This document shows, piece by piece, positions 13,979 through 54,530 of a stretch of 64,000 nucleotides of DNA. The position numbers were made by a program, and so were the translations under genes. The notes beneath the pieces were generated by a model that was not told the origin of the DNA, did not search any database, and saw only the letters and a list, made by a program, of their open reading frames with translations. The first letter of the stretch is position 1. Each line of letters begins with the position of its first letter. The DNA is from Oikopleura dioica (Eukaryota > Animalia > Chordata). The stretch is taken from the NCBI GenBank assembly GCA_907165135.1, contig OU015566.1:4154001-4218000 (forward strand), read 5' to 3'.

Positions 13979-15158
13979 ATGGAAATAATCTGCGCGGGTT
14001 TTCCGAAAACCGGCTCAAAAAGTTGCTCCAACGCGCTCAGGTGATACCAATTTCAAGATAGAAATCACTTCTTTTAAAGAATTCTTGGCTACAATGTGGC
14101 CGATCTCAGCGAAACCATCCATTTCATGTCCGAAGTCTGGTACGATTACATGAAGGGCAAGTGCTCGATTCATCGCGTAATCGAAGAATACCAAAAACAT
14201 GGATTTCAAGTGAACCAAGACGTTCCCTCCAATGTCTTCTGGGAACAGCTCTACCACGCTTCTCCAACTGCAAAAGTCATCCTAACGGTTCGTGACAGCT
14301 CAGAAGTCTGGCAAAACTCATGGAACAAATTTGCGGCGAGCTTTAATACCCAGTTCGGCAACCCAGGATTTTGGATTTATCATCGATTAATTTCGATGGG
14401 CTGGTCAAGTCCCAACATGAATCGATTCAATTGGATGATGCCGGAGTGCATGAAAATCGGGTTTTTGCGAAACTGCGATCAGGAGTTCTTCCCGGCGCCT
14501 TGGCACATTTTTACGGGGGAACAGCTTATTCGGACGATGCAGCCATACTGGTTCGTAATTTTTTTGATAACTCTTAGGGGTTATTTTAGGGATGGGATGG
14601 TCGACCAATACGAAAATCACAATCGTCGAGTCCAAGAAATCGTGCCAGCCGACCGCCTCCTCGTTTGGAACCCAAAAGACGGGTGGGAACCACTTTGTCA
14701 ATTTCTCAACAAGCCTATTCCTGACTCGCCTATTCCGGTAAAAAAAGAGGGATGGTGTCTGGAACCGACAAAAAATTTCGACAAATTTTGCGTGGGCGGC
14801 TACTCGGCTGCTGATTGGCCGGTTTGCCGAATCCAGGCTTCTGATTGGTTGAAAATTACCACGCAAAATTTGTCGAAATTTTTTTGTCGATTCCAGACGC
14901 CTCTTTAAAAAAGAGGGCGTTCTAACTAAGCAATTCTAGCACGACAACAAAACGGTTGACAAAGATTTCATGAAGCGATACTTGCTCGAAGGCGATCCTG
15001 GCATCGACGCTACCAATTGGGCGCAGTGGTACATGAAAAAAGCCATTGTCAAGGTCGCTCTTCTCGCTGGACTGGCAATTTACGAAAAGAAAAATGACTT
15101 TCGTCTGACAAAAAAGCTACTTGAATTTTTGAAAACGAAGGTGACCAAATTTTTCTGA
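13979..15158 (+). CDS. Sulfotransferase family protein, tandem copy 1
   Basis: MEIICAGFPKTGSKS P-loop-like PAPS-binding motif, AKVILTVRDS, LLVWNPKDGWEPLCQFL; GT-AG introns at the same positions as in copy 2. Confidence 0.85.
14754..14901. mobile_element. MITE (~148 bp, ~41-bp TIRs) in the last intron of sulfotransferase copy 1
   Basis: GGTGTCTGGAACCGACAAAAAATTTCGACAAATTTTGCGTG ... CACGCAAAATTTGTCGAAATTTTTTTGTCGATTCCAGACGCC; absent from the equivalent intron of copy 2. Confidence 0.85.
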
Positions 15159-15393
15159 CAATTTTTTCCCAAAAAATTCTATAAATAAAACAAAAAAAAA
15201 CAAAGTCTTCTGCACTGATAATATCCCAGGAGAACAAACACAGAATTTGAACCCAGGAAAACTTGAATGACCTGTTACGTTACGACCTTGCAATTGATTC
15301 TTCAAATATGATTTTTGAAATGACAAATATTCTTATTCCGAACTATCTACGAAAGAAACTTTGCCTTCTGCATTTCGAGAGAGATAATACTGA

Positions 15394-16747
15394 ATGGAGA
15401 TAATTTGCGCGGGTTTTCCAAAAACCTGTTCGAAAAGTTGCTCAAATGCTCTTCGGTATTTTCTCTTCATTTATTAATAAATTATAATTTTGTAGAATTT
15501 TGGGCTACAAGGTCGCGGATCTGAGCGAAAACATCCACTTTTTGTCCGAAGTTTGGTACGACTACCTGAAAGGCCATTGCTCCATCCATCGAGTGATAGA
15601 AGAATACAAGAAGCACGGATTCGAGGCAAATCAAGATGTCCCCGGGAACGTCTACTGGGAAGAACTTTACCACGCTTCTCCAAACGCCAAGGTCATCTTG
15701 ACCGTCCGGGACAGCACGGAAGTCTGGAAAAACTCATTCATCCCTTTTCTCGAAAATGTCAACAAGCAGTTCGGAAACCCGGGATTTTGGCTTTACCACC
15801 GGACAATTGCCATGGGCTGGACTAGTCCGAACATGAATCGAGCTAATTGGACCACTCATGTTTGAAAAGAACGATTTTTTGTCCATGAAAATTTTTTTCA
15901 GGAAGTGATGAAAAAAGGGTTCTTCAGAAACTGCGATCAGGACTTTTTTCCAGCCCCTTGGACTGTTTTTACAGGCGAACAAATGATCAAAATAATGAAA
16001 CCATACTGGTAGGATAATCGACTTTCCCGATGTCAAAAGTCCAATTTTAATTATATATTATGTTTAGGGAAACTCGACGAAAAGTGAGCTTTTTTTTGGG
16101 CTTAGTAGGGAGGGAGTATAATACATATTTAGAAAGCCCAGGAGCTGGGGATCATTTTGACTATTGACAGTAAGGGGTTTGACTCATGCCCCGGGGCACT
16201 TTTGGCCTTCCAAAGAGGCAAAAATCTGGTACTCTCGGGATAAGGGACCGTAAGTTCTAGTATCCCGGGTCTGTGGATATGAAACCTTTTCGTCGAGTTT
16301 CCCTAATTATGTTATATTAAATTGCATTTTATTATCCAGGGAAGCGGCGGTCGACCAATACGAAAGCCACAACCGTCGAGTACAAGAAATCGTCCCAGCC
16401 GAACGCCTCCTTGTTTGGAACCCAAAAGACGGTTGGGAACCTCTTTGCAAGTTTCTTGGCAAACCTGTTCCTGACAAGCCGATCCCGGTAGGAGATTTTT
16501 TTTTATCAAATTATTATGACGATTCTAGCACGACAACAAAACCGCGGACAAAGATTTCATCAAACGATACTTGCTTGAAGGCGAGCCGGGAGTTGATGCG
16601 ATGAACTGGACCCAGTATTACATCAAGAAAGCGATGATCAAGGTCGCGCTTGTCGCCGGTTTGGCGATCTACGAGAAGAAAAATGATTTCCGCCTGACGA
16701 GAGGGCTTGTTTCTCTTCTGAAAAGAAACTTGTCGAGATTTTTTTGA
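15394..16747 (+). CDS. Sulfotransferase family protein, tandem copy 2
   Basis: Paralogue of 13979-15158 (MEIICAGFPKTCSKS, AKVILTVRDS, LLVWNPKDGWEPLCKFL). Confidence 0.85.
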
Positions 16748-16974
16748 ACAAAAACTTATTTAATAAAAATAAATAAATAATTTACAAAGTATTGTGCGAA
16801 AAAATTGAAGTATTCAAATTTATTCATCATCAGAAAAAGCTTCTTTCGTAATTTTTGCAAATGTTGTGCATTCAATCGATTCTTGTGATAATCGCGGATG
16901 ATCGAGCTCGTCGATTGTTTCTTGAAGTGTTTCATCCTTCAAATTCTTATTCGCCAAAAACCCTATATTTTCAA

Positions 16975-17420
16975 CTAAACCTTGTTATCATCCGGAAGCT
17001 GTCCGTACAAAATCTCATCGGAAATCTTCACCGCTTTGTAGAAAATGAAGCTGAAAAAGAGAAAAAGAATAATCGACAAAACCGTCAGCCAGGGCCTCAA
17101 TCGTTCCTCCGCAAGCTTCAAATTTTCCGGATGCTCTTCTCTGTACTTTCTTATCATTTCTGGAATGTCGACCAGAAGATAGAGCGTTTCTGGCTCGGTT
17201 TCTACTTCGATGCTGATATTTTTCATCTTTCAAATGGGAATATATTTTTTGGGAAGGGCCAATTTAGATTTAATTAGAATTAAGCCAAGTCTTTGCCTGT
17301 CTGATTTTTGATGCCCTTCGACAAAGTTGTCAAATCAATATCTTCCGAAAACGAAATGAAGCCAAATTGGACGTTTGAGTCGAAATTTTCAATCAGAACC
17401 AAGAAAAATGGGAAAGGTGT
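16975..17420 (-). CDS. 3' exons of a host gene with a C-terminal transmembrane helix; probably continuous with exons at 53.0-54.5 kb across the insertion
   Basis: ORF 16975-17226 ends in WLTVLSIILFLFFSFIFY; open frame 17420-17315. Confidence 0.45.
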
Positions 17421-17500
17421 CTTGAACCGACAAAAAAACTTCGACAAATTTTGCGTGAGAATTTTCAACCAATCAGAAGCATGGATTCGGCAAACCGGCC
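17416..17500. mobile_element. Left half of a MITE split by the Polinton
   Basis: 17416-17500 joined to 52920-52983 reproduces the reverse complement of the intact MITE at 14754-14901. Confidence 0.9.
17495..17500. repeat. Left 6-bp target-site duplication CCGGCC
   Basis: Identical CCGGCC immediately outside both termini; 6-bp TSDs are typical of Polintons. Confidence 0.95.
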
Positions 17501-17843
17501 AGTAGTATAATGTCTGGCTAGGGCTTAGCTGCAGGCCGCCCTTTCGCCGCGCCGAGTCCAAAATGAAAAAAAGTGAAAAAAGGGTGGATTTTGCGCGCTC
17601 GACATATGGGGACCCCGGGGCAAATACTTGGAAAATATCCAGACTTTGACTAGGGTGGGCAGGCCGTACGGCAGGCCGTTTGGACTCGGTGCAGTTTTGG
17701 GCGATTTGCAGCCAGGCTCTAGCCAGACATTTTACTCAAGTGGTCGATCAAAATTAAGTGGTCAATAAAATAAAGTGGTCAATAAAAACGAGTGGTCAAT
17801 AAAAACGAGTGGTCAATAAAAGTGGCCGAAAGGCTCTAGAATC
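17501..17843 (+). repeat. Left terminal inverted repeat (~343 bp) with subterminal AGTGGTCAATAAAA repeats
   Basis: Reverse complement of 52575-52913; only a few substitutions or homopolymer differences in the outer ~235 bp. Confidence 0.95.
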
Positions 17844-17962
17844 GGGGGGATAAAAATTTTAGCGACGAATTGGAAGCTGCCACCGGAAGTGCTTGGAATT
17901 GCTGCCACTGGAAGTCGACGGAGAAGCTGTCATCGAAAGTGGAACCTACTCCGCTGCTGAAA

Positions 17963-18225
17963 CTACAAACGCCGCCCGTAAGCTGGAAAACTCTGCTCTA
18001 CTCGACGACCGTTGTTCTCTGCAAAAGGTAAAATGAACACAGTTTCAGAAATCAAGAACCTTTATTAGCACAATGGGAGCATGGATAGCGATTGGAGCAG
18101 AAATGAAGGCGAGCCGTTGATTGGAGGAGGTCTTGTTGGTCGCTCGCAAATTCACACGCTCGCTGTCGCCGGGTAAAAGTATTTTTCCACGTGACTGGCT
18201 TGATGGTACTCAGCTGCTGACCCAT
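17963..18225 (-). CDS. 73-aa viral orphan with N-myristoylation-type start (MGQQLS) and a Cys/His cluster; 2 exons
   Basis: Exons 18225-18060 and 18018-17963; 41-nt GT-AG intron keeps the frame. Confidence 0.5.
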
Positions 18226-18786: not shown

Positions 18787-19024
18787 GCTAATATAATCAT
18801 GGGGATTAATAATTCAGCCTTCCCACACGCCCAACAGTTGTTCTAGAACACCCAAATTGTTGTTGTGGATAATGGTTGGGGTGTTGATGAAATTCCGTAT
18901 TTTTGCGAAAAAGGGCTCACAATCTCTAGAATTGTTGTCAACCTGAGGCCGAAATTTCAAATTTCAATCAGTCGCCACTCGTTGCTCGACACAAAAGCTG
19001 CATTTTGCGCTTTCTACGTTTATC

Positions 19025-19183
19025 ATGAAAACTAGGTCCAAGACCGCTTCCGAACGCCTGCGTGCGAATTCTACCGTGGAAGAAGCAACTGCTGAAGGTA
19101 AGTGCGCTACTACTTTATTTGCAGGGAGAGGGGGGGAAATTTACAGGGCCAAAAAAATCTTCACTTCTTTCGCTTCTGACTGA
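19025..19183 (+). CDS. Possible ~43-aa peptide upstream of the motif array; 27-nt intron
   Basis: ATG at 19025, strong donor GAAG|GTAAGT at 19098, acceptor TTTGCAG at 19124. Confidence 0.35.
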   Translation: MKTRSKTASERLRANSTVEEATAEGKCATTLFAGRGGEIYRAKKIFTSFASD

Positions 19184-19327
19184 CTGACTTCAAATATCTT
19201 CTTGTCCTCTTGGTTCTTGAATTTGAATGGTTGGCAGGTCCGATTTTCATTGTCGATCTGAAAAGGGTTAGAGTTTAGAGAGAGTTTTCAAAGAAGTCTA
19301 TTCTTGTGACAGTTGCGAGATCGTTTA

Positions 19328-21230
19328 GATTCATTTCAAAAGTTTTCTTTGCAAAACTAAAACGTGTCAGGTTTTCATTTTAGAATGGGAGTCGCAAAGA
19401 CAGTATACATAGCGTTTCATTTTAATGTCGGTGCGCATGGAATGAACGAGGAGATTATAGTTTCATTTTAACATACGTTGCCATGTGAATGAGGAAAATG
19501 GTTGCGATTCATTTTATCACTAAACTTGGGCTAGAATCATTTACGCAACGGGCTCATTTTATTCAAATTCGCTCGGGAATATAGTTGCCAAAGCGGAAAT
19601 GGTTTCATTTTCTAATCATCTTGGTAACATTCGTGTTTATTGTTGGGATTCATTTCAAAACAAGTGCGGGAATATTGGCGGCCACGGTCTAGTTTCATTT
19701 TAAATTCGAAATGTGCATCAACACCAAAGAGAGTATAGTGTTTCATTTTAAGCGCAGGGGAGAAGCTTTGGTACTTTCTCAAAATTTTAAAGTTTCATTT
19801 TGTTACGACTCGGACACCACTAAGTTCTATAAGTCTTGATTCATTTCAGAGTTGACAAAAGAGTACCTTGACTATCTACAAGATTCATTTTGGAACCGCA
19901 GTTTAATTAAATGGTGAAAGAATACTTGAATCATTTTATATCGTCTACTAAAGGACTCATTTTGGGCGTATCACACGTGATATGTCCAGTTAGTAGGAAA
20001 TTATATGTTTTCAAATTTGCCATCATTTATTTTGTGGCGGTGGCGGCGGACTAAATATAAGCGTTGAAAATCTTGGAGCATTTTATAGTCGTTGTTGTCT
20101 TCAGGGCTCGATTCGCTTTTCAGAGAGCTTGACAAGATATCTCTCGATTCATTTTACAATACGATTTCGACTGCCTAAAATTAGAAAAAGTTAGAGTTAG
20201 AGCTAAAATAATTTTAATCAGTCATTTCGGTACAGTAGAGTATGTTTATACTGATTGCATTTTATAAAGGGAACATTGCAGGAAAATTTTTGCTAACATT
20301 TTATTATAGGTTATATTGGTCGCTTTGCGGAGGATTTTTTTGTCAGCATTTTATTGCCACGAGAAGTAGAGTAAAGATATTTGACACATTTAATGGATCG
20401 GGTTGAAAACGGATAGTACGTTCTTCAAAGGGTTTCATTTTAAACAAATGCCTATCGTAAGGATATCAAGACTCTGGGGTCATTTTATGTGTCTAATGCG
20501 TAGAGATTGTACCAAAATTGGCTTCATTTTAAGAGGGCGACTGGAAAAGAGCCTTATGAACAAAACGCTTCATTTTATGAAATGGGGGCTTCGAAGAGGC
20601 TTATTGAGGGAAGCGTTTCATTTTACGAATATGGGCGCGTGGAAAAGGCCTCATGAATAAAAAGCTTCATTTTAATATTAGAAAAATTTCCTTAAAAATG
20701 AACTTAACGCTGAACGAAACGTTTCATTTTATATTATGGGGCGTCGCGTTTATTTATCTTTTGTCTTTTATCAAGAATCATTTTATTCGTTGTCGGGGAT
20801 TTGCACTCAAGTTTCCTTGCGTTTCATTTTATAGTCTACAGAACTTAAAGTATACTGGTCTGTTAGATTTAGCTTCATTTTAAACCCTTTTTCTTTAATA
20901 AATGACATACTATTGGAATCATTTTAAATGCGCCAGTAGATTTCAGTGCAATAATTTTTGCAGGTTCATTTTAAAAACGTCGATTGAATCTCATTTTCGT
21001 GTAGAACATTTAGAATCATTTTAAAAACGGGCAGTATGGAACGATTAACAAACAATGTTTAGTATCATTTTACTGTTTTGATTTTTGATCAAATTAAAGT
21101 CCATTTTGAAACATTTTGACGCGTATTGTTGAGAATCATTTCAGTTCAACTAATGAAATTACTAAAAATTTGGAATCATTTAAGCAAAGTTGCAAAACCT
21201 AAGTCCCATAGCTGATACAGAATTTCATTT
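19328..21230 (+). repeat. Periodic array of a short (T/A)TCATTT(T) motif with mostly unique ~35-40 bp spacers
   Basis: About 45 CATTT on the + strand versus about 9 on the - strand; in-phase spacings mostly 42-52 bp; no long ORF. Confidence 0.85.
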
Positions 21231-21439
21231 TATAAACATAGATCTTTCACTCTTTCTCACTTTCTAAAATCTCTCGGCGTCTCTCTTTTTTGCAGATCTC
21301 TCATTCTAGTCTCTTTCTTTTGCTTTCGGATCTCTTTTCCTTCAAGTCATTTTGATGAAAAGTTGTCAAAGTGGCCCACATTTATGCTCCCCAATATTGC
21401 GCCCTCAGCGAAGAACCCTCCATTGATTTTTCTTTTTAG

Positions 21440-23963
21440 CCGTTGCCGACTCCCCACTACGACCAGCTGCTGGATCCGAGCAATCGCAAGGTAATCCCTA
21501 TTCATTGTCGATTTTCCGGAAACAAGTCTTTAGACCTTGAAATCGCGGCCCAGCATGTTGCTTCCGCGGCTGCCGATACAAGCGACGCGCTCTCATCGGT
21601 TATCGAGGCTGGGCAATCAATTCTGCTCGACGAATCGATGGACAGCTTCCACAATCCACCACCTCGACGAAGCTCCTCTCTTCGCGATCCTGCTCCCTTC
21701 AACGCCTCTTCTGGCAACACCACTGGACCCAACAGCTCGTCCTCCTCCGCCGAAAAGACCGTCACCCTCCCACATGTGCGAAACCAATGGGTTAACGAAG
21801 GCTCCACTCTCGTCGAAGAACCCGTTGCTCGCCCAAACGACAACACTACCAGCGCCGTCCCCACCAGCGACTGCTCCTGCGAAGAAAAGTCGCCCAAGCT
21901 TCCCCAGAAGCGCAACTGGGAAATGGATGGATCGACTGATCCTGAGAATCGCCCCCGAAAGCGATTCCAAGACGGCCGCGCTCCTCCCACCAGCTCCAGC
22001 GACGACAGTGTCAACGACACCGATTATCTGCTCGTAATGGGCGCTCCAGGTGCTGCTGAAAAAGCCCAAGAAAAGGCCAAGAGACGTGCTACTGCTGCTG
22101 CTCACGCTCGAGCTTTGGAGATTGTCGAATCTTCCTACCGAGCGTTGGCTCCTTCCGACGGCGACTCCTCTCAACCCGACAGCGACGATTTCGATGGCGT
22201 GCTCAACAAGAGCGAGCCCCGTCGAGTTGTTGTCAACACGAGCGAGGAGAACGACACACCCAACAACTCTCCTGACAGCGACGGCAGCGAGGAGCCCATG
22301 CGCACCACCAACTTTGACCCCTTTGCAAACAGGGGCGAAAGAGGGCTGGACTTGCGATGGCTCAACAAGCACGATCGCGTTGTCGTCCGCCAGCCTCACC
22401 GAAGACCTTCCGAAGACGCTTCCGGCTCGGACAACGTGTCAATGGAGGTCCACACGTCCGAGTGGAGCGACTCTTCTGCTGCTGGAGCCTTCCTTGGACA
22501 TCCCACCTCCTCCTCCTCCTCCTCCTCCTCGCCCCCGTCTGACAGCAACAGCACCCCCAACGCCAGCACCGTTGCCAACGTTGGCACCGTTCTCGCCGAT
22601 GTCATCGAGGAAATGGCCGAATCGATCATGGACATTTCGGATCTGTCAACCTTGACAGATCCCGAGACTCCCACCAACGCTCAGCCCCCACTCGGAAATG
22701 GGCTCTCACCCGCGATGATGGCTGGCGCTCTTACCGGCCTTTGCGACAACGGATTTATCCGTAATATGTCGCCAAAAAAATCGGCTCCGCTCGCTTCTCG
22801 ATCAAAGGGCCCGCTTAGCCCTGTTGAAGTGGTCTTGGTTCGCCAGATGGATTCCTCGTCGTCTGGCTACAGCTCTGGCTCAAAGAGCGGCGAAGAAGAG
22901 CGAGAGCTGATGGACGTGGACCCGATTCTCGCGATCAAGGAGCGAGCTCTTCTTGGCGGCGAAAGCTCAAGCTCCTCCGACGAGCCCACCACCAGCAGTT
23001 ACAACACCAGCTCCTCCTTCCCAACTGGCTCTTCTTTTGAGCCCAGCTCAATCAGCGGCAACTCCAACTGCAACTCTTCCTCCAACGGCAACTCCTCTTC
23101 TAGCGGCAACTCCTCCTCCAACGGCAACTCCTCCTCTTCCAACGGCAACACCTCCACCAGCGGCAACTCCTCCTCAAACGGCAACTCCTCCTCAAACGGC
23201 AACTACTCTCCCAACGGCACCGGCAACGCCTTCAAAGGTTCCATCGTCACCGTCTTTGACGAAGTCGATGTTGGCGCCGACCTTGGCGAAACAACCATCG
23301 TCGCGCCAGCCACGCCTGCTAACCGATCTGTCGTCACCGTACCTGGCGGCAGCGTCGCTGCTCCCGACGAGAGCGTTTTTGTTGGCGGCGCCGACGTAAG
23401 CGGCATTTCTGGCGTCGAGCCCCTCAACGCCACCGGCACCGGCCCTTCTCCCAACGCCACCGTCCTCAACGGCAGCGGCAACGGCGCCAACGGCAACTCC
23501 ACCAACGGCAACTCCACCAACGGCAACGGCACCTACACCGAGCTCCGATCCGGCGAGAACGGTCAGATTGGCGAGCAGGGCAACATTGTCCTTCGGGCGT
23601 ACCGACGGGATGGAACTTTGGGCCGGCCAACCGACTTCAACACCCCGCGAATCTTTCGCATTGAAAGCTTTGTCGAGCCGCCACACAAAGGTACTTTCCA
23701 TCAAGATAATTTAAATCAAGAACTTTTAATCAAATCATTTTAATCAAAACTTTCTTAATCAAAATTTAGCTCCGGCCGACGCGACCCCCTTCAAAAAGCA
23801 GCTGGTCTCCCTCAAGAACAACCTCGCCGAGATCTACCTCAACCACGACAACTTCCGCGAGGAATTGGCGAATGGAGAAGTTGGGGCGCTGATCCTCGTC
23901 AAAGACGAAAATGGGCGTGTGACCGCGTTCAAGAATAACATTGTCTTGCAGCGACGAAATTAA
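21440..23963 (+). CDS. Large Ser/Asn/Gly-rich disordered viral orphan (>750 aa) with a short globular last exon
   Basis: ORF 21443-23743 with C-ending codon bias and NGNSS repeats; donor at 23691, acceptor at 23769, last exon SGRRDPFKKQLVSLKNNLAEIYLN... The exact phase at this junction is unresolved. Confidence 0.7.
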
Positions 23964-24082
23964 CGGTTTAAACTCCACGGGAGTCTGTTTTCAAAAATAA
24001 ATTCAATTTATCTTTCATATAAAATGCAACTGATTCTTGATATTGATTGCATTTACGAGTGTCTGAGTCGAGCAGAGCAGGG

Positions 24083-24510
24083 CTAGAAAGCGGAGCGAAA
24101 AATTAGAGTAGAAATCGGAGCGAAAATTAAGAGTAGAAATCGGAGCGAAAATTAAGAGTAGAAATCGGAGCGAAAAATTAGAGTAGAAATCGGAGCGAAA
24201 ATTAAGAGTAGAAATCGGAGCAAAAATTAAGAGAAGAAAGCGGAGCGAAAAATAGAGCTAGAAAAGTAGAGCTTGAAAAATAGAGCTAGAAACTTGCGAG
24301 TAGAAAATGGAGCGAAACTTAGGAATTAAAAACTCACGAGTAGAAAATGGAGCGAAAAAAATTAGAGCCAGAAAAGCCGAGAGCCAATTTTAAAAAATCT
24401 CGAAATTCCAGAGAGCCGCCTCGAAATTCCATAGAGTCGCATCGAAAATCCAGAGAGCCGCCTCGGAAATCCAGAGAGCCGCCTCGAAATTCCATAGAGT
24501 CGCGTCGAAA
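24083..24510 (+). repeat. Intergenic tandem repeats: ~7 x 25 bp (GAGTAGAAATCGGAGCGAAAATTAA) then ~5 x 21 bp (CGAAATTCCAGAGAGCCGCCT)
   Basis: Directly visible units. Confidence 0.85.
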
Positions 24511-24867
24511 ATTCATATTTTTGGAAAAAGAGCCAGTTTCAAAAGTGCAAGCTTGCAAAAAGCACAATTCCAAGAGTCACCATGCATTTTTTGAAATTCA
24601 AATCTAGGTTGAGTTTTCCCTTTTCGCAAGATTTCGTCAGATTTGTACTTTCGAGAATTGCTCTGGGTTCGTTTCTTGATGGCGCCCGAATACAAAATTA
24701 CGAAAAAGGCCACATTCCGATGCTTATCAAAGTCCGGATGTTCCCAAGGTCAAATTCTGCTGAGAGAAAACTGCTGATCGAGAGAAAGACTGTGCCGACT
24801 GTTATCAATTTTGTGGCGCCTTTGACTCTTTGCCCCCTCTTTCTTTGATAATTGCCGCGTCACTAAC

Positions 24868-35668: not shown

Positions 35669-35899
35669 CGCCCTTCTCACGATGAAGTGTCTTCAACCAA
35701 GCCATAGCACCCAAGCAAGCCTGTCCTGCAGTTCAAGAATGCACGAACATTATATTAGAAAAGGATACACGTGTGAAACAAGTTCAATACGGCTAGGAAT
35801 GTAAGGAATGTGAGAGATATATGCGCGGCCCCTTTTTGGTCTTTTTTCTGTGGCACCATTTTTTACACCTTTAAACTGCTTTTACTGGAACATTTGTAC

Positions 35900-36035
35900 A
35901 TTTTCACCCTTTTTCGCCTTTTTATGCTTTTCTCGTTATTTATGCTTTTCTCGTCATTTATGCTTTTTCGCCATTTATGCCCTTTTTCGCCATTTATGCC
36001 CTTTTTCGCCATTTATGCTTTTCTTCGTTATTTAT
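35900..36035 (+). repeat. ~7 x 17-19 bp TTTATGC(T/C)TTTTCGCCA-type repeats at the convergent end of the two transcription blocks
   Basis: Directly visible. Confidence 0.7.
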
Positions 36036-36267
36036 GCCCTGAATTCATTTAAAAGCAAAAATCCAAAAAAATCTCAAAACCTCTTTTTAAACATGATTGA
36101 AACTGCCAATAAACATTGTAAATATTCATCTTAAACAATCGTTTTTTATTTACAAAAGTTGAGCAGGTTTTGCGCACATTTAAAGCTAGTTTGGAAAAGC
36201 AGAGTTGCAGAAAAATGAAGGTTGAAGCAGGGTTAAAGAAGCAGAGTTGAAGCCAGGCAGGGTCGAG

Positions 36268-37328: not shown

Positions 37329-40300
37329 CTAAATTAGAGATCCATTTGCACGCCTGAGGGGTCGAGTAGTGACCTTGTCCGGCATAATCAGTCGTTTTGT
37401 CAGTATTGGGTTAATGACCTTGCGCGTTGTTGTCACCGTCTCCATTCTGTCGCGCTTTCGATTCCACAAAAACTGGGCCACATCTCGCGTCACTCGCTGG
37501 TAATAATCGATTCCAAATACAGCACACAGAAACTCGTAAAACCTATAAATTAGTCGGTCTGTTGTGTGCGCGGCTACTTACGAAAGCTGAATCTTTGTCT
37601 TGCATCCCTTGGTCGACTTTTTCGTAATTTTGGGCTCCCGTACGGGCTGCGCAAAAGTGTGCAAAATCTCCAGCGTTCGATGCTCATTTCTTGGGTCGAC
37701 AATTTGCTTCTCCAACTCGCAGGGCTCTTTTGGGCACAATGCATAACACTTGGGCGAAAGTGTTAGAAACCAGCCCGATTGGATCGATGCCTCTTCTTTC
37801 AGCAGCCCCGGCTCCTTTTGACTTTCCACCGATTCTCCAGCAAACCATTGTGGCTCGACAGCTTCCTCCCACATTTTCACCAAGTGTGGCTTGACACATT
37901 CTTTTAGCGTCGCTCTTGTTCGAGCATAGGCCAGCGAGTCTGTGTCGCAATAGCAAAATTTTACAGTTCCAGGAATCATGAAATCCTTGATAATGTCCTT
38001 GAACTGCAATAAATGCAGCTTCGAGTTTTGATAAATGGCGACTTGGATATGAAGTGCCAAATTCTCAATAACGGTCGACTTGCGCATGACAACTTCATGA
38101 AGCGGGTCCATTGCCACATCCTCGACGCGAATCGGTTTATAAGCTTTGAACATTGAGCTTTCAAAGCACTCGCGGAGACGATCAGCACCGACAATTTTTG
38201 TATTTACAAAGCGATGATTTGCTTGCGCAAATTTTCCAACAAACGAGTTCAAAAAGAGCTTGTACATGTTTGAGCCGGCATCGTCGCCCTTTTTCTCGCA
38301 CTCGATTCGCTCCTTGACCATTTTGTTGACAAAGTTGGCAAAGGGCGCTCCTCGATAGTAGTTGACAAAGTACTTGATTTCATACTCGTAGCCTTGGTCA
38401 ATCAAGTATGCCAGCATATCGCTTGTGCACAAGTAGTTTTCCTTGTTGTAGCAAAAGATGTTGTCTTCCTTGGGAAACATTCGCTTCTTGACATCTGGGG
38501 GAATGATGCGGTCAATGTGTCCTTGGCAGTCTCCAGCTTCGAGTTTTACTCGCGCAAAAATGGGCGGAATTTCGGGATGGCGATCATAAACTTCTTGCGT
38601 CGCCTTCAAATCAACCATAATAAAGCCAAAGAATTGCGTCTTGTTGCCCTCGATGCGACGAGCAAAGGTTTCCCTAACGTCATTTTCGCCAACGACTTCG
38701 TCAAACAAAAACGGATAATCGGCACTGTAGAGCATCTCGGGACGTTTTCTCAAAATGATCGACTTTTCCTTGACCCATTCACAGTGGTACTTGATGCGCA
38801 ACACGTGGTGAAAATTTTGTGGGCCTTGGAGGCCTTGAACATGTTGCCCGTCTAGAGTAGGCTTTCCCCAGTCTTGCATCTTGTCTTGCTCGCGCAATGT
38901 GTCGACAATCGAATGGATGCGCTCAATTTCTAGTTGGACAATTTCGGGCGTCGAAAGAACCTTGTTGACAAATTTGCCATTGACAGAAACTCGACGTGTT
39001 CTAGCGGATTTATAGAGCACTTTTTTGCAGGAAAGAAGCGGACACGGATGAAAATGGCAGCCATTGTACTCGACAAGCAGCTTTTGAACAATGTGCTCGC
39101 CATCGCTGTTGGTGAAAATCTTTGAAAGTGTAGCAAAGCCGTCAATCGAATATCGCCCAATCTTTTTTTCGACAAAATTGTAGGCATGTTTGATGCGATC
39201 GCCCATAAAGTTTTTGTTCAAGTACTCGAGGTAGCGGATCGACTCGAGTGAGGGATTTTCCTTTTTGCGATAAAGTGGAGTCGCTCTAAAATTGTTGAAA
39301 TTGCTCGTCTGTCGCTTGTACAGCATTCCGGCGCCAATTGGAAGCGGTTGACGAGCCATGTGTCCATACAAAGCATTGAAATCGTAAATTGTAAAGTCGC
39401 AAAAGGCTTCTCCATTTGTAGATTGCCACAGCTCTTTGGGAAGATCGTCACTGGGCCCATTGAGATTAACTGCTCGGTGAACAGACTGACAGATGCCGCC
39501 TGTAAGATTTTCGCGCAAATCATTGTAAAAGCTTTCTGCCTCTTTGGGCGGCGAAATAATTGGCGGCAATTGTTCATCATAGTGCATAAATGCTGCAGTT
39601 TGGGCAAGCTGTGCAATTGAGAGTCCTCCATGTGCGCCAAGTCCAAAAACTTCGAGACACTTTTTCGAGTAGGCATCAATCGCCGCGGTCAGCAATCGCA
39701 CGTCGTTTAAATTGTAGTTGACAAGGAATTGCACCATGTGCATGTTTTTGACGCTTTTCGCAATCTCATCCCAGAGGCCAAGACTTTCATTGTAGGCTTT
39801 GGGCGAAATGTGAAACATTTTTTTCACCGCTTCATTTTCAGCATCGCACTCGTAGCAGTCGCCCTTCCATTCAAAATGCGAATAAATGTACTGGATCATT
39901 GTGGGAGGACAATCTGGTGGCAAATCTTTGAGCGCAGGAGAATCGTACAGTCGCTCGAGACCAAGGTACTCGTCGAGTTTTTCGAAAAAGTTGAGCTGCG
40001 TCCACTCGCCCGATTCAAACTTGCTCTTGATAATTGAATTCATTTCAAGCGCGTGATCTTTGCACGGAATGTAGAGCGAAGACGAAAACGCTGGATAGGG
40101 CGGCAATTGAGTTGTCTGATACATGGTTTCCATGTCTGTAAACAAGTCGTAGGGGAAAATGCCTTTGGAAAAGGCGGCAGGATCCAAGTTGAACGATCGA
40201 GCAAATTTTTCAAGAGAAATCGGCCCCACGTGGTTCATAAAATCCCGAAAACTTATTCCCGCACACTCGAGCATCATGTAGCCCCCGTCACGTTTGATTA

Positions 40301-42476
40301 TATTGAGCTGATTTGATTTCCTTCCAACAAAATCATACAGTACCGACGTGAGCAGCGGCATCAATATTCGCAAGTCGTAGCTTTCTCCATTCCAGGCGTA
40401 GCACTTGAGTTTGAAAAATTCTTTGAGGTAGTTGAGCTTTTTGCGAATGACGCCTTGCTCCTCGGGCGTAAATTGATCCTTGGCATCTTTGCTCAGCTGG
40501 TAAGAGTACATGTCGATCCCTTGCTGAAGACATGGAGGTAATTTTTCGGCCGCGCGCTGTCTCAGCTTGGACAAATACTTGACGAACTTGGCCGCCATAA
40601 TTATGCCACTTTCGTAGTTGAGATCTTTTCTCAAAAACCATTCCTTTTCTCCATCGCTAGTCATGCAAGCAATTGAGACTACATTGTGGAATTTGTGATT
40701 AGAGAGAAGCGGCTCCTTTTTTGGGGTTTTTGCCCTTTTTGACTTTTTTGGGCGTCGCAAATGCGGCGGCAGTGCTTGCATTGATCCATTGATTGAAACA
40801 CAATTGTTGTCGACTTGCATTTCCTCGCCGCCGCCATTGTCCTCGCCGTCGTCATCGTCGCCATTGCCCTCGCTCTTGCCGTAGTCGTTGGTGTTTTCGT
40901 AGCCATAGATTGACGCAATTCGGCCAAGCGAGTCGCTCGACATGACCGATTCTATGTCGTAGGTTATGTAAAAAGTTTGGACAAATTGCTCGTGTGGCAA
41001 ATAACCATCTTTGACAATTTCTTTTATAAAGTCGGTCACGTGGCGGCCGCGCACCGTTTGCGTGATAATTCGCCTCTGCTCTAGAGTGCACTTTTTGATG
41101 TGATCTTTCATTCGAGCGGGGCGATCGTTTGTATACGGACAGTTTTGGGTGGGGCAGCGCGGCATATCTTTCACTTCGGAACTTTGAAGCACTCGCACGC
41201 GGGTATTTTCGTCAAATACATTGGGCACAAGTCCACCCAAATTTCGTATCGGCTCGTCGTCGTCGTTTTCAATATCGGTGGCATCGCTGTCGTACTCGGG
41301 AAAAAGGTCAACGTCGTCGTCACCGTCAGAGTCGCACCGCTCGTCGACGTCGGTAAGGTCGCCATAGTCGGCACAGTTGTAGTCGTCTTCGTCTTGCATG
41401 GCAGCGGCACCAGCGGCGGCACCGCCAGTTCCAGCAGTGGCGATATAAGTCCCAGCAAAACCAGCCAATTCTCTCAAACTGTCAGGATACTTTTCGAGTC
41501 GACTTTTTCGCCAGTTGGGGTGAGCAGCAAGGCCAGGGTTTCTCCAGGGCTCGGCTTTAAGGCGCTTGTAGCTCACGTTGGCAAATTTTTCAAATTGGTC
41601 CAAAAAAGTGTCACTTGTGTGCCCAGCGACGAGCAGATGCAGCTGCTTGTGACTTTTGAGCGGCATGGCGCCATAATAACAACGACGATCGCGCACATTA
41701 TCGTTGACAACATTGCCAGTATAAAGCATAATGTTGACTCCAAAGCGAGATCTTATCCGGCCAAGAACACCATCGGAAATTGAAAACCGCTCATTTTCCG
41801 CCAACGTCAGCTCCTTTTTCACGTGCTCGATTTTCAAGTCCTGCTCTTCCCGGCTCAACTTTGGCCATTTACAGTTGACAATGGCTCTCCAAACAGAAAT
41901 CCAATTTTTGTCAAAATCTTCTGCCACGCGGCGAGTTGGAATAAAATGAAACGTGCCCAAGCGATGGAAAAATGGCCTACTACTCTGCAAAACAACAAGC
42001 GGCCGATCGCGGTCAAGTTTTTCTAGCTCGCCAAGCACGTTTCGAATGCAACTAGGTCCAGACGTTCTGTAGGGCCTATATGAAATTCCCAGGGGCGCAT
42101 AACGTCCCCCATACAAAATGTAGAGATCAATTCCGAGTCGCTCTTCAATACGAGGAAAATCGCTGCGTTTTGGAGTGCCAAACTCGGCAACCAAATCATC
42201 AACATTGACATCCACAATTTTATCCCACAAGGCGCGCGAAATTGTTTTTGGCTGCTTACCTCCAGACAGACGGTGCCAATTTATTCCCAGCTTGACTGCG
42301 TGGTAAAAGTTGGTCTTGCAGCCTCCATCATCATCATCGGAATCAGAGGAATCATCGGATGTTCTTGAACGAAATCTCTCGCCTTGACGATTCGAATACA
42401 AAAAGCGATTACGGCGCTTGCGAGCACCTTCAGATTCATGCTTTTCACGATTTATTAAAAATCTTGAAACTTTCAT
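37329..42476 (-). CDS. pPolB: Protein-primed family B DNA polymerase (~1702 aa), 2 exons, with a VSR-like nuclease insertion
   Basis: Exo I YDIES, Exo II NGESYD, Exo III YNLND, motif A YDFNALY, motif B KLFLNSFVGK, motif C YCDTDS, KCY, KSTKG. The 39-nt intron 37581-37543 adds the typical C-terminus (...KVINPILTKRLIMPDKVTTRPL). Confidence 0.97.
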
Positions 42477-44793: not shown

Positions 44794-47038
44794 TTAAATT
44801 TCAGTCTTGTCTTTAACAAAATTAATTTCGGGTTCGTAGTAACGGCGATGCAAAGTTTGGCCCTGGGGACCTCGCAAAGAGTAAGTTGGTTCAAAAGTTC
44901 CAAAGTGAATATCAAAAATTTCGTACAATTCTTTGGTCCACTTTGCGCGCGCCCCTTTCCTAAAGCGGGATGATTTAGCTGCAGGTAAAGTGTCGAGAGG
45001 GATTCGAACAAGATCTCCAATAAAATATTTGGAACTTTTGCCAGTGCGTTCTTCGTACTTGCGCTTGAGTTCCAAATAATCAAAAAGCTCGCGCGCATTT
45101 GCACGATTAACGCTACTGGGAGCACGATTAATTGCGCTATGCACAGAATTATTGTAGGCAACATTGACATCTTGAAGAATGTGTATCCAGCGGCGAATTC
45201 CGTTGTGCGATGCGAAATAGAGCTCCAAACGATCTTCCAGCGTGCGACTTAAGTTATCCGTTTGAATTTAACAAATTAAAATTGCATGCAAAAGCTATCA
45301 ATTATTCAACGCACTTGAATCGCTCAGCAAGAGCAGCTTTTACGCCGGTTAGCTTTACGGGCGTCATGTTCCAGTCGTCGAGCAGAAGCGCAACTTCCCC
45401 CTTGAATTCGTTTCCTTGATCCGTCATAAACATGGTGTGCCCAGGCAAATCTAGCGTGGAAAATATGTCGCCCAAAAGCTGAGCGCATTCGGCAGATGAT
45501 TTGGTTTTCATGGGGCGCACAAAAGATTGCCGAGACAATCCGTCTACAACTACCAAAATGTATGGATAGCCAGAGTTGACGGTGGCATCGTTTTTGTACG
45601 CTTCGATTGTATCTGCATAAAGACACGTGTAGAGTCCAGTTGCAATGACGGGATTTCGCCTAAACTTTTTGACAAGCGGCTTGTGGCGAGAAAGCACTTC
45701 ATTGCGCCGCTTCATTTTTGCCACATCGAGCCGCGAATATGCAGTTGGCTCGTTGAAATTGTAGAATAAATGTTGACTGTTGTTGGGTTGTTGTTGTTGT
45801 TGTTGTTGTTCTTGTTGTTGATTTGGTTGTTGCTGGCGTTGTTCCCGCTGGCGTTGTTCCCGCTGCTGCTGCTCATTTCCAAAAATTGGAAAGGTCCTTG
45901 ATTGGGGCTCCTTCGGGCTCGGGGTCGCTTGATTCGCGCGATTCGACTGAGTCGGAGTCGACTTCTTCGTCGTCGTCGCCGATGGTGGCGGTGGTGTGAC
46001 CAGGTTCAACTTTGACTGCGGTGACCTTAGGTTGAGCATCTTTGCTATTCTTCTGGATCTCTCCAAATTGCTTTCGGAATTGGGCAGACCGCTTTGCAAA
46101 ACTGTCCTTGGCATCATGTCCGGCAAATCCAACGGGTTCCCGAATTGATCTACTGTCCGTTGGCTCGAGCTCGGGCTGCTGGTGGGGATTTCCATCGGCT
46201 CCGAAAAAGTAGTCTTTTGGGTACCACTGCTTGGTTGGAGCAAATCGAGGAAAGTCGTCTTGCCGCTCTTCTCGCCCCCCACGCATTGGGTCAAAAAAGA
46301 AAGGCCGCGGCTCTGGGTGAGCAAAGCCGGAGTAAGAATCGGTTTGACGACTGTAGGGCCAGTTGGATCTCCTAGCCCTGCTCTGTTGAGCTCCTCGGTC
46401 ATCGTATCTTGCCATTTTGCCGCCGCCTGGACTGGGTTCAAATCGGACCCGCTTGGATCTGGGTTCAAATTTTTGTTCAAATTTTTGATCAAATTTTTGT
46501 TCGAATCTGGGGTCAAATCTGGGGTCAAATCTGGGGTCAAATCTTGGGTCGAATCGGGGGTCAAATCGGGGGTCGAATCTTGGGTCAAATAGGGGTTCAT
46601 AATAGTCGGGTTCGTAATGGCGAGGTTCGTATTCGCGAGGCTCGTATCTTGGCTCGTATCTGGAATCGTGCCTTGGCTCGGGATGGGAACCATGCTTTGG
46701 TACATGCCGTGGCTCGTGCCTTGGTTCATGCCTTGGCTCGTGCCTTGGCTCATGCCTTGGCTCATGCCTTGGCTCATGCCTTGGCTCATATTCGCCTCTG
46801 GGCGGTCCAGCGGAAGTGGAGTTTTCCGCGGCCGGCCTCGGGGCCTCTTCGTTGTCTGCAAATCTTTTTGGTGAGTCTTCTGATTCGACTTCGTATTCTT
46901 GTTGCGTCGGCTCGATGTCAATGTTTCTAGGCCTGTAGGAGTACGATTTTCCCATTGGAATGGCTCGGTTTGAAAATCTTGCAACCATTTGGGCGGTTCG
47001 CGTCTCCTCTTCGGTGTAGTCCGGGTAGGGTTCGCCAT
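44794..47038 (-). CDS. Retroviral-type DDE integrase (~725 aa) with a long disordered N-terminal extension; 2 exons
   Basis: YADT, YILVVVDGLSR, TDQGNEF; the 67-nt intron 45314-45248 restores AERFNRTL; C-terminal YFIGDLVRI...KGARAKWTKELY...YYEPEI. Confidence 0.95.
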
Positions 47039-48136: not shown

Positions 48137-48872
48137 ATGATCGGCTCAAGTTTTCTTGGTAAGTACTTTGGGGACACGCGGCTCAAACATCCATTTGCGG
48201 CGATTATTAGCGGAAGTACGGGCACAGGCAAGACCCACGTAGCTAAACAGCTCATTGAAAAAGAGGGCATAAGGGGAAGAATTTCGACCATTTATTACTT
48301 TATGCCCCGCCTGGAGCCTTTGAACATTAAACCCCCAGCCCATCAGCGATTATTTTTGATGGAAGGTCTCCCCACTAGAAAATGGGTTGATGACACGTTT
48401 AAAGAGACCCAGCGCGACACTCTGATTATTTTCGACGATCAGTGGGCAGAGTGCGTTGAAAACCGGGCAATCGAATATCTCTTTGTTTATGGGAGACGCC
48501 ATCTGGGGATTAGTTTAATTGGCATCACCCAAAATTTTTATCAAAAGTCGAAAAGCTCCACCCTCTATCGGTTTGAATTTTCTAGAATTGCCTCAACTAA
48601 TTGTTTATTTTAGCAATTGCATGACATGCTTTGTCTTGCTGCCGAATCATGTAGACTCGTCAATCAACGCCACCATCGCCACCAAGCTCGGCTACAGCGC
48701 CTGCTACAAAGCCGCCCGAAAGCTCTTCAAAGAACGTCGATGCCGGTACCAGTACGTTATAATTAGAAAAGACGTAGAAGATCCGACGACGCCGACCTTT
48801 TATACAAACGCCTTTTCTGACATTCCCGAGTTGGGGCCAAACCCCGTCTTCTTTGAAGAAAACGACGAGTAA
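48137..48872 (+). CDS. A32/FtsK-HerA-like packaging ATPase (230 aa); 2 exons
   Basis: Walker A GSTGTGKT, Walker B LIIFDD, GRRHLGISLIGITQ; the 43-nt intron 48571-48613 restores LYRNC. Confidence 0.93.
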
Positions 48873-52287: not shown

Positions 52288-52574
52288 TATTCAGTTGCTG
52301 TAGATATTGATTTTAAATGACAACTAGAAAATTGGAGCGCATTTATACCTACCTCGGTTTCTAGCGCCAATTTTTCACGCCTTGTGTTATTGGAATTTGA
52401 TTTAATCAATTTAGATTGGACCGCAATCGAAGCATCATCTACATCCAGCATCTACATCTTCCGCCAGCTGTGCCACCATCGTCCTGCAATAAAGCCTTCT
52501 TCCGCGAAAATGGGTGCAACTTGTCGTTATTTATGCAGATAAGATCTTTTGAAATTTAAAATTTCACGCCCCAG

Positions 52575-52913
52575 GATTCTAGAGCCTAGCGGCCACTTTT
52601 ATTGACCACTCGTTTTTATTGACCACTTTATTTTTTATCGAACGATTTATTTTATTGACCACTTAATTGACCACTCGAGTAAAATGTCTGGCTAGAGCCT
52701 GGCTGCAAATCGCCCAAAACTGCACCGAGTCCAAACGGCCTGCCGTACGGCCTGCCCACCCTAGTCAAAGTCTGAATATTTTCCAAGTATTTGCCCCGGG
52801 GTCCCCATATGTCGAGCGCGCAAAATCCACCCTTTTTTTCACTTTTTTCATTTTGGACTCGGCGCGGCGAAAGGGCGGCCTGCAGCTAAGCCCTAGCCAG
52901 ACATTATACTACT
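52575..52913 (-). repeat. Right terminal inverted repeat (~339 bp)
   Basis: Ends in ...CATTATACTACT; reverse complement of 17501-17843. Confidence 0.95.
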
Positions 52914-52983
52914 CCGGCCAATCAGCAGCCGAGTAGCCGCCCACGCAAAATTTGTCGAATATTTTTTTTCGGTTCCAGACACC
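52914..52983. mobile_element. Right TSD (CCGGCC, 52914-52919) and right half of the split MITE
   Basis: Matches the reverse complement of the first ~70 bp of the intact MITE (from 14754). Confidence 0.9.
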
Positions 52984-54480: not shown

Positions 54481-54530
54481 AATCGATTCAAGATGTTTCC
54501 GTGATTCTCGTTTCTGATTGGCTTAATTGG

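Follow-up and report, generated by a model that had tools for sequence, protein, structure and literature searches.

A phased, one-strand motif array in the annotated first intron of an Oikopleura dioica Maverick gene is a candidate row of cis-acting binding sites

Introduction

Baculovirus homologous regions and the Epstein-Barr virus plasmid-origin family of repeats are iterated cis-element arrays, built from protein-binding sites with a cis-acting role as enhancer, origin or tether. Similarity in these arrays extends over the whole repeat unit, and palindromic sites are frequent. Adenoviruses, which share the ancestry of their protein-primed family B DNA polymerase (pPolB), packaging ATPase and protease with Mavericks, possess short, AT-rich sites that are repeated toward the left end, as well as first-intron sites, and these function in packaging and late-gene activation; the adenovirus packaging ATPase IVa2 binds both the packaging repeats and the major-late first-intron downstream elements. 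The subterminal repeats of the transposons Ac/Ds and En/Spm, to which a protein encoded by the element binds, occupy the outermost few hundred bp at each terminus, in mixed orientation and with no regular spacing.

Among the virus-like elements found in animals, Mavericks/Polintons are widespread. To our knowledge, almost nothing has been described of their cis-acting DNA, including promoters, packaging signals and maintenance elements. Here we analyze a motif array in a Maverick from the tunicate Oikopleura dioica. Because it comprises ~41 motif repeats, occupies 5% of the length of the element and bears signs of purifying selection, the array is a concrete candidate for a Maverick cis element.

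Results

The array is located in a 35.6-kb Maverick on chr1 of O. dioica OKI2018_I69, inside the window, by which we mean the whole 64,000-nucleotide stretch of DNA that was analyzed (Table 1). Positions 8309-28755 of the window align to this chromosome with 100% identity. A preliminary description had placed the array inside a Polinton/Maverick, and pPolB, an integrase and terminal inverted repeats (TIRs) confirm this placement, with the family B polymerase and the rve integrase found together with long TIRs that bound an element in the 15-40 kb range. The pPolB open reading frame (ORF) matches DNA_pol_B_2 (E = 5.5e-17) and has 809 relatives at E <= 0.001. The rve match of the integrase (E = 3.2e-6, 27.8 bits) is under the Pfam gathering cut-off of 32.6, and the gene is syntenic in five relatives. 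The matches of the candidate packaging ATPase to Pox_A32 (E = 1.5e-4) and Adeno_IVa2 (E = 1.1e-3) are both under the curated cut-offs. Pfam identified neither capsid proteins nor a protease in the element, and there is no recognizable DNA-binding domain among the element proteins tested. The right end of the Maverick has just a plain 17-bp tandem repeat, at 51900-52010, as a counterpart of the array.

Table 1. Coordinates of the motif array, its neighboring genes and the carrier Maverick within the window.
Feature	Coordinates	Strand	Details
Whole motif array	19328..21236	+	~41 units, period ~46 bp, every motif on +
Block A, well phased	19328..19965	+	15 units, steps 42-52 bp
Middle block, looser	19966..20430	+	motif shrunk to CATTTTAW; steps 35-73 bp
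Block C, well phased	20431..21236	+	~18 units, steps mostly 44-57 bp (35-40 toward the 3' end)
Three young paralogous units	20521..20663	+	recent tandem duplication; invariant columns: motif 10/11, spacer 14/38
Annotated Maverick gene, 824-aa Ser/Asn-rich product	19025..23963	+	intron 1, ~19098 to ~21439, encloses the entire array
Divergent promoter region	18842..18930		two TCTAGA: 18842-18847, 18925-18930
Small Maverick gene P0007, annotated 130 aa	18309..18755	-	divergent from the array host gene
Left TIR	17416..17861		88% identity to the right arm, 449 columns
Right TIR	52557..52983		pairs with the left TIR 17416-17861
pPolB	37578..42476	-	uninterrupted 1632-aa ORF
rve-type integrase	45302..47038	-	Pfam rve and synteny
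Candidate A32/IVa2-like packaging ATPase	48137..48613	+	weak Pfam matches, gene conserved in all relatives

The + strand of 19328-21236 contains ~41 phased copies of WNNNGNWTCATTTTA that recur with a ~46 bp period, with unrelated spacers between them. The CATTT coordinates given in the preliminary description are all correct, as are its counts of 45 copies on + and 9 on - (19300-21260). In 1000 dinucleotide-preserving shuffles, CATTT was found on the + strand 8.4 times on average (sd 2.6, max 17), against the 45 observed. The longer TCATTT is present in 37 copies on + and 2 on - in the array, while the rest of the window has ~1 per kb per strand, and a three-unit gapped pattern yields 12 matches in the array versus 0 in shuffles. 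The distances between pairs of copies have peaks at 47, 92, 144, 189, 235 and 280 bp, and the top Fourier peak, at 46.4 bp, was above all shuffles (200/200). The enrichment, strand bias and period of the array are all far beyond chance. The Fourier spectrum of the array lacks a 10-bp A/T periodicity, and its spacing of 46 +/- 4 bp is out of helical phase. The array has no coding potential, and a coding repeat is ruled out by steps that are not multiples of 3 and by a longest ORF of <=85 aa. No Rfam covariance model matched the array at its gathering score (best E = 0.97), and RNA folding energy relative to shuffles gave no signal (z = -0.48). A reading of the motif as a splice site was rejected on the grounds that AG is not enriched after it.

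To describe the motif, positions were counted from the C of CATTT in 41 aligned units. Conserved positions include W at -8 (39/41), G at -4 (33/41), T at -1 (35/41), T at +5 (33/41) and A at +6 (34/41), and a pyrimidine-purine (YR) step is found at -17/-16 in 24 of the 41 units, ~4 sd above the other offsets (mean 9.4, sd 3.6). The short motif initially recognized is real but was drawn too short, with conserved positions that extend further out: the site spans ~24 bp and consists of the YR step, 7 nt, W, NNN, G, N, W and TCATTTTA. The conserved part of the unit amounts to 11-15 nt and is degenerate. Outside the motif, no column deviates from background composition by more than the random-anchor control does, except for a borderline signal at -16. 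Because conservation is confined to discrete positions across ~24 bp, the pattern at -17/-16, -8, -4 and -1 to +6 resembles the footprint of a protein that contacts DNA in separate patches. The sequence GTTTCA, which the preliminary description had related to the upstream motif of nematode 21U genes, is read by only ~10/41 units, positions -3 and -2 being degenerate, and the comparison loses its footing because the host is a tunicate and not a nematode. The YR-N-T start of 21U genes is likewise absent, as the YR step at -17/-16 is not accompanied by T enrichment two positions later.

Outside one young family, the spacers have no significant mutual similarity. This family, first noticed as a paralogy between the units after 20525 and 20618, is real and comprises three units, in which the invariant columns number 10 of 11 within the motif and 14 of 38 within the spacer (Fisher p = 0.0018). 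Young units keep the motif and lose spacer columns. New units come from local tandem duplications of 46-49 bp; their spacers then drift until they are random, and what persists is the motif and the ~46-bp spacing. Both growth by duplication and retention of the motif and period, as originally suggested, are supported by these three units. Almost every 46-bp slot across 1.9 kb retains the motif, the spacers are saturated, and the motif appears to be held in place by selection. The sole report of Tandem Repeats Finder on the array is 20521-20674 (3.2 copies, 69% matches). An ordinary minisatellite, with units alike over their full length, was rejected, as only that segment repeats and the other spacers are unrelated; a uniformly decayed minisatellite, which the preliminary description had named as an outcome that would count against it, is not borne out because the motif is better conserved than the spacers. 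Comparison of the spacers with the rest of the window and with seven related Maverick loci gave no significant match, which leaves the suggestion of a store of captured foreign fragments unsupported. One 18-nt spacer identity of low complexity was seen, and it recurs in the near-identical copy of the element in the Y-specific region (YSR).

The annotated gene model, of which the preliminary description made no mention, makes the array first-intronic, and 10 of the 10 splice models that yield the annotated 824 aa place the array wholly in intron 1. The host gene is the first of the Maverick + strand gene block, in which intergenic gaps are short, and its annotated first intron is 2.3 kb long; the median O. 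dioica intron is 49 bp (PMC8008620). The array is ~300 bp downstream of a divergent promoter region, where two TCTAGA elements precede the start codons of the flanking gene pair by 87 and 100 nt. In O. dioica, TCTAGA serves as the spermatogenic core promoter element and is located ~44-48 (40-50) bp ahead of a sharply defined start site (PMC6389100). There is no exact TCTAGA within the array, and the hexamers at -8 to -3 resemble it weakly, with a mean of 3.2 mismatches versus 4.3 elsewhere; array units were rejected as TCTAGA spermatogenic core promoters on this basis. Self-priming, in which each unit would provide the upstream element for the start of the next unit, was also rejected because exact TCTAGA is absent and a T run lies 45 bp upstream of each TCA. 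The 824-aa product has no relatives and no Pfam or PDB matches, a search for relatives of the 766-aa ORF adjoining the array found none, and PDB sequence searches with both proteins flanking the array gave no match. Structure prediction for P0007 was of low confidence (mean pLDDT 58.7).

A second copy of the Maverick, in the YSR, is 99% identical and retains the same array. This copy carries a nested insertion. The YSR also has a pPolB copy, P0010, that is 87% identical. The chr1 and YSR arrays differ by 4 substitutions only, and for this reason the comparison, which involves two near-identical copies, has no power to detect constraint between them. Several diverged Maverick families of O. dioica emerged from a search with representative pPolB sequences. 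In a distant relative, L002 (pPolB 37% identical), an ORF-free stretch contains a smaller one-strand cluster of CATTTTAW, with 16 copies versus 0 on the other strand (shuffle mean 4, max 10). This cluster may be coincidental, since it is at the opposite end of the element, is irregularly spaced and shares only the CATTTTAW core. Loci L221-L225, from other O. dioica families, have no array within 10 kb of pPolB, the array-homologous region being >16 kb past pPolB. A scan of viral contigs with the pPolB alignment found no relatives. The three-unit gapped pattern occurs in 96 stretches in IMG/VR and at least 120 in JGI metagenomes, and the multi-unit matches listed were dismissed as satellites, with spacers 80-95% identical, or as chance matches in AT-rich genomes. 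Neither the other introns of the window nor those of the other O. dioica loci fetched are enriched in the motif. The statement that no such array is known in Polintons agrees with our searches, in that none comparable was found among the IMG/VR and JGI matches listed or in the related O. dioica loci.

Discussion

We favor a reading of the array as a selected row of candidate binding sites for one factor that acts in cis for the element, to which we assign a probability of roughly 40%. It is a broader form of the earlier proposal of iterated protein-binding sites for packaging or replication. The ~41 same-oriented copies of one asymmetric recognition site would be maintained by selection, with each site bound by a single sequence-specific factor, host- or element-encoded, that has a footprint of about one unit. 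The factor-loaded array would then work in cis for the element, possibly by enhancing the + strand gene block from within the intron or, alternatively, as a tethering or packaging-type nucleoprotein platform, and the divergence of its spacers would shield it against recombinational collapse. Binding sites are suggested by the enrichment, strand bias and period of the array, by the discrete conservation across ~24 bp, and by the preservation of the motif in paralogous units. They are also suggested by the presence of the array in both copies, the lack of RNA fold, Rfam match and ORFs, the adjacency of the promoter region, and the L002 cluster. Counting against them are the lack of a recognizable DNA-binding domain, the lack of helical phasing, and the arrayless loci of other families. 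The uniform orientation of the motifs follows from tandem duplication, and therefore by itself provides no argument for DNA over RNA.

Because the array would be transcribed within an annotated intron, a role at the RNA level is equally compatible with most of these facts. The ~40 sense copies in the intron or primary transcript could bind an RNA-binding protein and so influence how this unusually long intron is spliced or retained, keep the RNA in the nucleus, or titrate a host factor. The motif strand is the sense strand of the annotated host gene, every 824-aa model makes the array wholly intronic, the skews of the + strand (T>A, G>C) fit a transcribed non-template strand, and a 2.3-kb intron is exceptional next to the 49-bp median (PMC8008620). 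However, the conserved positions are gapped across ~24 nt, beyond the reach of a typical single RNA-binding domain, there is no evident need for near-constant spacing along a flexible RNA, and neither RNA structure nor enrichment of the motif among the other introns was seen. We consider an RNA-level function rather unlikely. It is quite improbable that the array has no function and is an old minisatellite in which a mutational process, such as microhomology-seeded duplication or repair, and not selection has kept the motif. The array does grow through tandem duplication, motif and period have partly decayed in the middle block, and one element family is known as the carrier, all of which would fit such an origin. 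Nevertheless, the core occupies ~41/41 slots and the unanchored flanking positions are kept in 33-35/41 even though the spacers are saturated, conservation is differential in the paralogous units, and microhomology-seeded duplication would copy whole units instead of repairing mutated motifs.

A further alternative, which we regard as improbable, is that the units are tiny transcription units, with a short RNA starting at the A of TCA or at the YR purine at -16; from -16, the product would be a ~22-nt RNA that ends in the T run and combines a variable 5' part with a constant 3' part. The TCA(+1)TTTT core matches the TCAKTY form of the initiator, CA initiators are common in O. dioica (PMC6389100), the YR step is position-specific, and products of constant length would account for units of constant length. 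The ~46 bp period also resembles the ~44-48 bp between element and start in spermatogenic promoters (PMC6389100). This account has to contend with the absence of exact TCTAGA and the weakly similar hexamers, with the position 45 bp upstream of each TCA being taken up by the T run of the previous unit, and with the absence of a position-specific T that would mark a 5' U; moreover, no small-RNA system of this kind is known in tunicates. Its most specific version, in which each 46-bp unit is an autonomous mini-gene that starts at the YR purine 16 nt upstream of the core and stops in the T run, yielding ~40 different ~22-nt RNAs with a variable, seed-like 5' part and a constant 3' part, is highly improbable. 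If true, it would mean that a chordate has virus-borne small-RNA genes, clustered and directly transcribed, whose logic parallels that of nematode 21U genes and whose origin is independent. We give almost no credence to a CRISPR-like store of captured foreign fragments. The layout alone, in which unique segments of similar length are separated by a short constant element, speaks for it, and to this extent the CRISPR-like architecture noted in the preliminary description stands; the resemblance fails in repeat length and identity, in the origin of the spacers and in cas genes. The spacers lack significant matches in the window and seven related loci, new units come from duplicated neighbors, and there is no acquisition machinery in this eukaryotic setting.

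The genome of O. dioica, at 70 Mb, is represented by several chromosome-scale assemblies from diverged lineages, and CAGE, RNA-seq and germline chromatin maps of the species have been published. Once re-mapped, these data could tell the readings as DNA site, RNA motif and mini-gene apart, and no new experiments would be needed.

As in the baculovirus and Epstein-Barr virus arrays, many motif copies are crowded here into a non-coding stretch of 1-2 kb within a virus-type genome. Unlike those arrays, this one has 11-15 scattered conserved positions and unrelated spacers, and its asymmetric sites all face one way within an intron, with a binding protein that is so far postulated. The likeness to adenovirus is one of reiterated sites toward the left end and within a first intron, together with a candidate A32/IVa2-like ATPase encoded by the element. 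Adenovirus has ~7 sites a few hundred bp from the terminus, whereas the ~41 sites of the Maverick lie 1.9-3.8 kb from the terminus, and with a beginning at 1.9 kb the array is outside an adenovirus-type packaging position. Like the nematode 21U clusters, the array has many units on one strand, a GTTTCA-containing motif in some of them and unique sequence downstream, but its units are ten times denser. CRISPR arrays have near-identical repeats of ~23-55 bp, in contrast to the 11-15 partly degenerate conserved positions seen here, and this array, in a eukaryotic host, is neighbored by Maverick genes and not by cas genes. With Ac/Ds and En/Spm it shares short motifs reiterated amid unique sequence near one end of the element, from which it differs in being one-oriented, regularly spaced and farther from the terminus.

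A strand-biased motif array with a 46-bp period

Reading of 19000-21600 and counting of motifs reproduced all array coordinates of the preliminary description, and its approximate tally of CATTT agrees with the exact counts for 19300-21260, namely 45 plus-strand and 9 minus-strand copies. In 1000 dinucleotide-preserving shuffles of this interval the + strand is expected to carry 8.4 ± 2.6 copies, with a maximum of 17. TCATTT occurs 37 times on the + strand and twice on the − strand of the array stretch, and about once per kb per strand in the remainder of the window, while a gapped three-unit pattern has 12 matches in the array versus 0 in 100 shuffles. The distribution of distances between pairs of motifs has maxima at 47, 92, 144, 189, 235, and 280 bp, and the Fourier maximum at 46.4 bp lies above all 200 shuffles, bearing out the proposed periodicity against shuffled controls; a 10-bp Fourier component is absent from the array. 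Both motif and spacing are looser in a middle block at 19966-20430, as had been described between the phased runs.

We aligned 41 phased units with the C of CATTT as anchor and used random anchors as a background control. Unanchored positions that exceed the control are W at −8 (39/41), G at −4 (33/41), T at −1 (35/41), T at +5 (33/41), and A at +6 (34/41). A pyrimidine-purine (YR) step at −17/−16 is found in 24 of the 41 units, compared with 9.4 ± 3.6 at thirty other offsets, and keeps phase with the downstream core, not with the upstream core. The unit therefore reads YR, 7 nt, W, NNN, G, N, W, TCATTTTA, followed by ~22 bp that are unconstrained, and its recognizable part spans ~24 bp, because the non-background positions run from the YR step to +6. 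Spacers carry almost no positional information, and their comparison with one another revealed no significant similarity outside the paralogous units at 20521-20663, consistent with the earlier view that they are mostly unrelated. The array contains no ORF of note, and the steps between units are non-multiples of three.

The paralogy noticed earlier after 20525 and 20618 is real and involves three adjacent units in all (20521-20663). Across these three, the motif is invariant in 10 of its 11 columns and the spacer in 14 of its 38 (Fisher p = 0.0018). This comparison shows tandem duplication to be the source of new units, with the motif subsequently changing more slowly than the spacer, in line with the growth by duplication with a retained motif that had been suggested.

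The array lies in a predicted intron of a Maverick gene

The presence of terminal inverted repeats (TIRs), a protein-primed family B DNA polymerase (pPolB), and an rve integrase upholds the placement of the array inside a virus-like element of the Polinton/Maverick type, here 35.6 kb long. pPolB is an uninterrupted ORF of 1632 aa, and shares 97% identity with a protein of Oikopleura dioica OKI2018_I69; the long N-terminal extension before its polymerase domain has many residues that are invariant across relatives and has no Pfam assignment. Window positions 8309-28755 match chr1 of the OKI2018_I69 assembly (OU015566.1, 4162309-4182755) with 100% identity. A candidate A32/IVa2-like ATPase has a weak score. 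Gene order is common to this Maverick and five other Maverick loci.

Coordinates of features in and around the Maverick
Feature	Position	Strand	Remarks
Two tandemly duplicated Sulfotransfer_4 genes	13979-18176		
Miniature element	14760-14925		~150 bp
Second Sulfotransfer_4 model	15394-18176		crosses the left TIR into the Maverick
TIRs	17416-17861 and 52557-52983		bound the Maverick
Tandem repeat	17737-17821		17 bp
TCTAGA	17835 and 52578		one per TIR
TCTAGA	18842-18847		87 nt upstream of annotated gene start 18755 (−)
TCTAGA	18925-18930		100 nt upstream of annotated gene start 19025 (+)
Annotated gene	19025-23963	+	824-aa product; assembly annotation
Low-complexity coding repeats	21443-23743, 28774-29167, 32216-32455	+	
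Tandem repeat	24059-24283		25 bp
Tandem repeat	24378-24536		21 bp
TCTAGA	32686-32691		125 nt upstream of annotated Maverick gene start 32811 (+)
Tandem repeat	35899-36043		18-19 bp
pPolB ORF	37578-42476		
Tandem repeat	51900-52010		17 bp
Interstitial TTAGGG-type telomeric repeat	53882-54050		~28 units, 0.9 kb beyond the right TIR
Inverted repeat	54527-54698		71 nt

The assembly annotation, made by AUGUSTUS with RNA-seq hints (PMC8008620), includes a gene that spans the array and has an 824-aa product. We enumerated its splice models with canonical GT-AG sites, at most three introns, restricted acceptor windows, and a product of exactly 824 residues. In 10/10 such models the first intron starts at 19036-19102 and ends at 21220-21439, which would place the whole array in the first intron of this gene. 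The best-looking model joins a GTAAGT donor at 19098 to a T-rich acceptor whose end is at 21439. A predicted intron of 2.3 kb would be exceptional in a genome with a median intron of 49 bp (PMC8008620).

In O. dioica, TCTAGA is the core promoter element of spermatogenic genes, where it precedes the start site by ~44 bp (PMC6389100). The genes starting at 18755 and 19025 are divergent and flank a pair of these elements, and the A of a TCA lies 45 nt downstream of 18925. The positions of TCTAGA hint that the Maverick is wired to the male-germline promoter code; window-wide the element is not enriched (24 observed versus ~19 expected).

The + strand Maverick genes are rich in low-complexity coding repeats, with Ser/Asn-Gly runs and 12- and 15-bp periodicities, and for the 766-aa ORF adjoining the array neither relatives nor domains were detected. 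Plain tandem repeats within the Maverick are intergenic or in or near the TIRs, and the array motif is unrelated to them. Outside the Maverick, a miniature element in one of the two sulfotransferase paralogues consists of both Maverick ends, fused head to head and flanked by an 11-bp direct repeat; because the homologous place in the other paralogue is empty, we interpret it as a Maverick-derived MITE-like insertion. Either the Maverick inserted at the 3′ end of the second Sulfotransfer_4 gene or that gene model is mis-joined. The TTAGGG-type repeat at 53.9 kb, consistent with a chordate (PMC8008620), is followed by an inverted repeat.

Copies and relatives of the array

A second copy on the Y-specific region (YSR), recovered as L100 plus L001, is ~99% identical to the window Maverick and has the same array CATTT counts of 45 and 9. 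The comparison covers these two near-identical copies, whose arrays differ by one ~30-bp length difference and 4 substitutions, 2 of them at motif positions, far too few for measuring constraint. The YSR array also harbors a nested 3956-bp element, absent from the chr1 copy, that is probably a cut-and-paste DNA transposon given its ~180-bp TIRs and 8-9-bp target duplication. The annotation splits the YSR pPolB (on L001) into two gene models, 292 and 988 aa long, implying at least one interruption, whereas the chr1 pPolB is uninterrupted.

Further Maverick families with 40-44% identical pPolB are present in this genome as well as in that of the Norwegian strain. Such an array was not found within ±10 kb of pPolB in these families, where the array-homologous region lies >16 kb past pPolB. 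In L002, a distant metagenomic Maverick relative (pPolB 37% identical), an ORF-free AT-rich stretch at ~800-1620 has 16 versus 0 CATTT by strand (shuffle mean 4.0, maximum 10), on the strand that, with respect to pPolB, also carries the motif of the window array. This cluster lies beyond the ATPase gene, at the element end opposite to that of the window array, has irregular spacing, and shares the CATTTTAW core alone; it is possibly a distant analogue, and the resemblance is weak. Pattern scans of IMG/VR and JGI metagenomes gave satellites and chance matches only, among the matches listed.

Possible functions of the array

The array is strand-uniform, phased at 46 bp, and present in both copies, and it heads the + strand gene block, with a divergent promoter region a short distance upstream. 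The conserved positions form patches over ~24 bp, the flexible YR step among them, and each 42-57 bp accommodates one site, a pattern most suggestive of the footprint of a DNA-binding factor. We give a probability of roughly 40% to the array being a row of sites for a sequence-specific factor, loaded side by side and acting in cis for the Maverick. Each unit would bind one such factor next to its neighbors, and the loaded array could enhance the + strand block from within the predicted intron or, alternatively, provide a platform of the tethering or packaging type. With its unrelated spacers, such an array would be stable against recombination. A nucleic-acid-binding domain was not seen in any Maverick protein tested.

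It is unlikely, although the next most plausible option, that the motif instead acts at the RNA level and is read on intronic RNA; the array matches no Rfam family, contains no tRNA, and does not fold better than shuffles (z = −0.48). We are more doubtful that the units are tiny transcription units that start at either the TCA or the YR step, a reading that does account for the constant unit length. A link to nematode 21U genes through GTTTCA, raised in the preliminary description, was rejected: the host is a tunicate, GTTTCA occurs in just ~10/41 units, and the 5′ U signal is missing. Slightly less probable than the transcription units is a by-product without selection; across the array the spacers are saturated, yet the core is present in essentially every 46-bp slot. 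A store of captured foreign fragments, also raised earlier, is highly improbable, since units demonstrably arise by duplication of their neighbors and the spacers have no significant match in the rest of the window or in seven related loci. The sole exception is an 18-nt exact identity between 20087-20104 and 47552-47569 (− strand), near the integrase-ATPase region; it is of low complexity and isolated, has a naive chance expectation of ~0.003, and is also found in the near-identical YSR copy.

Comparison with known systems

The array could be assigned to none of the families tested, and in the literature searched no array of this kind was described for Mavericks/Polintons or Oikopleura, in agreement with the earlier statement for Polintons. 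Large DNA viruses have arrays of iterated cis-elements, and TIR transposons have subterminal motif arrays; these are nearest in function. Within the same virus lineage, the nearest counterparts are those of adenovirus, whose repeats and first-intron elements are bound by the packaging ATPase. Unlike all of these, the array described here combines unrelated spacers and a regular 46-bp period with ~41 sites in one orientation inside a predicted intron.
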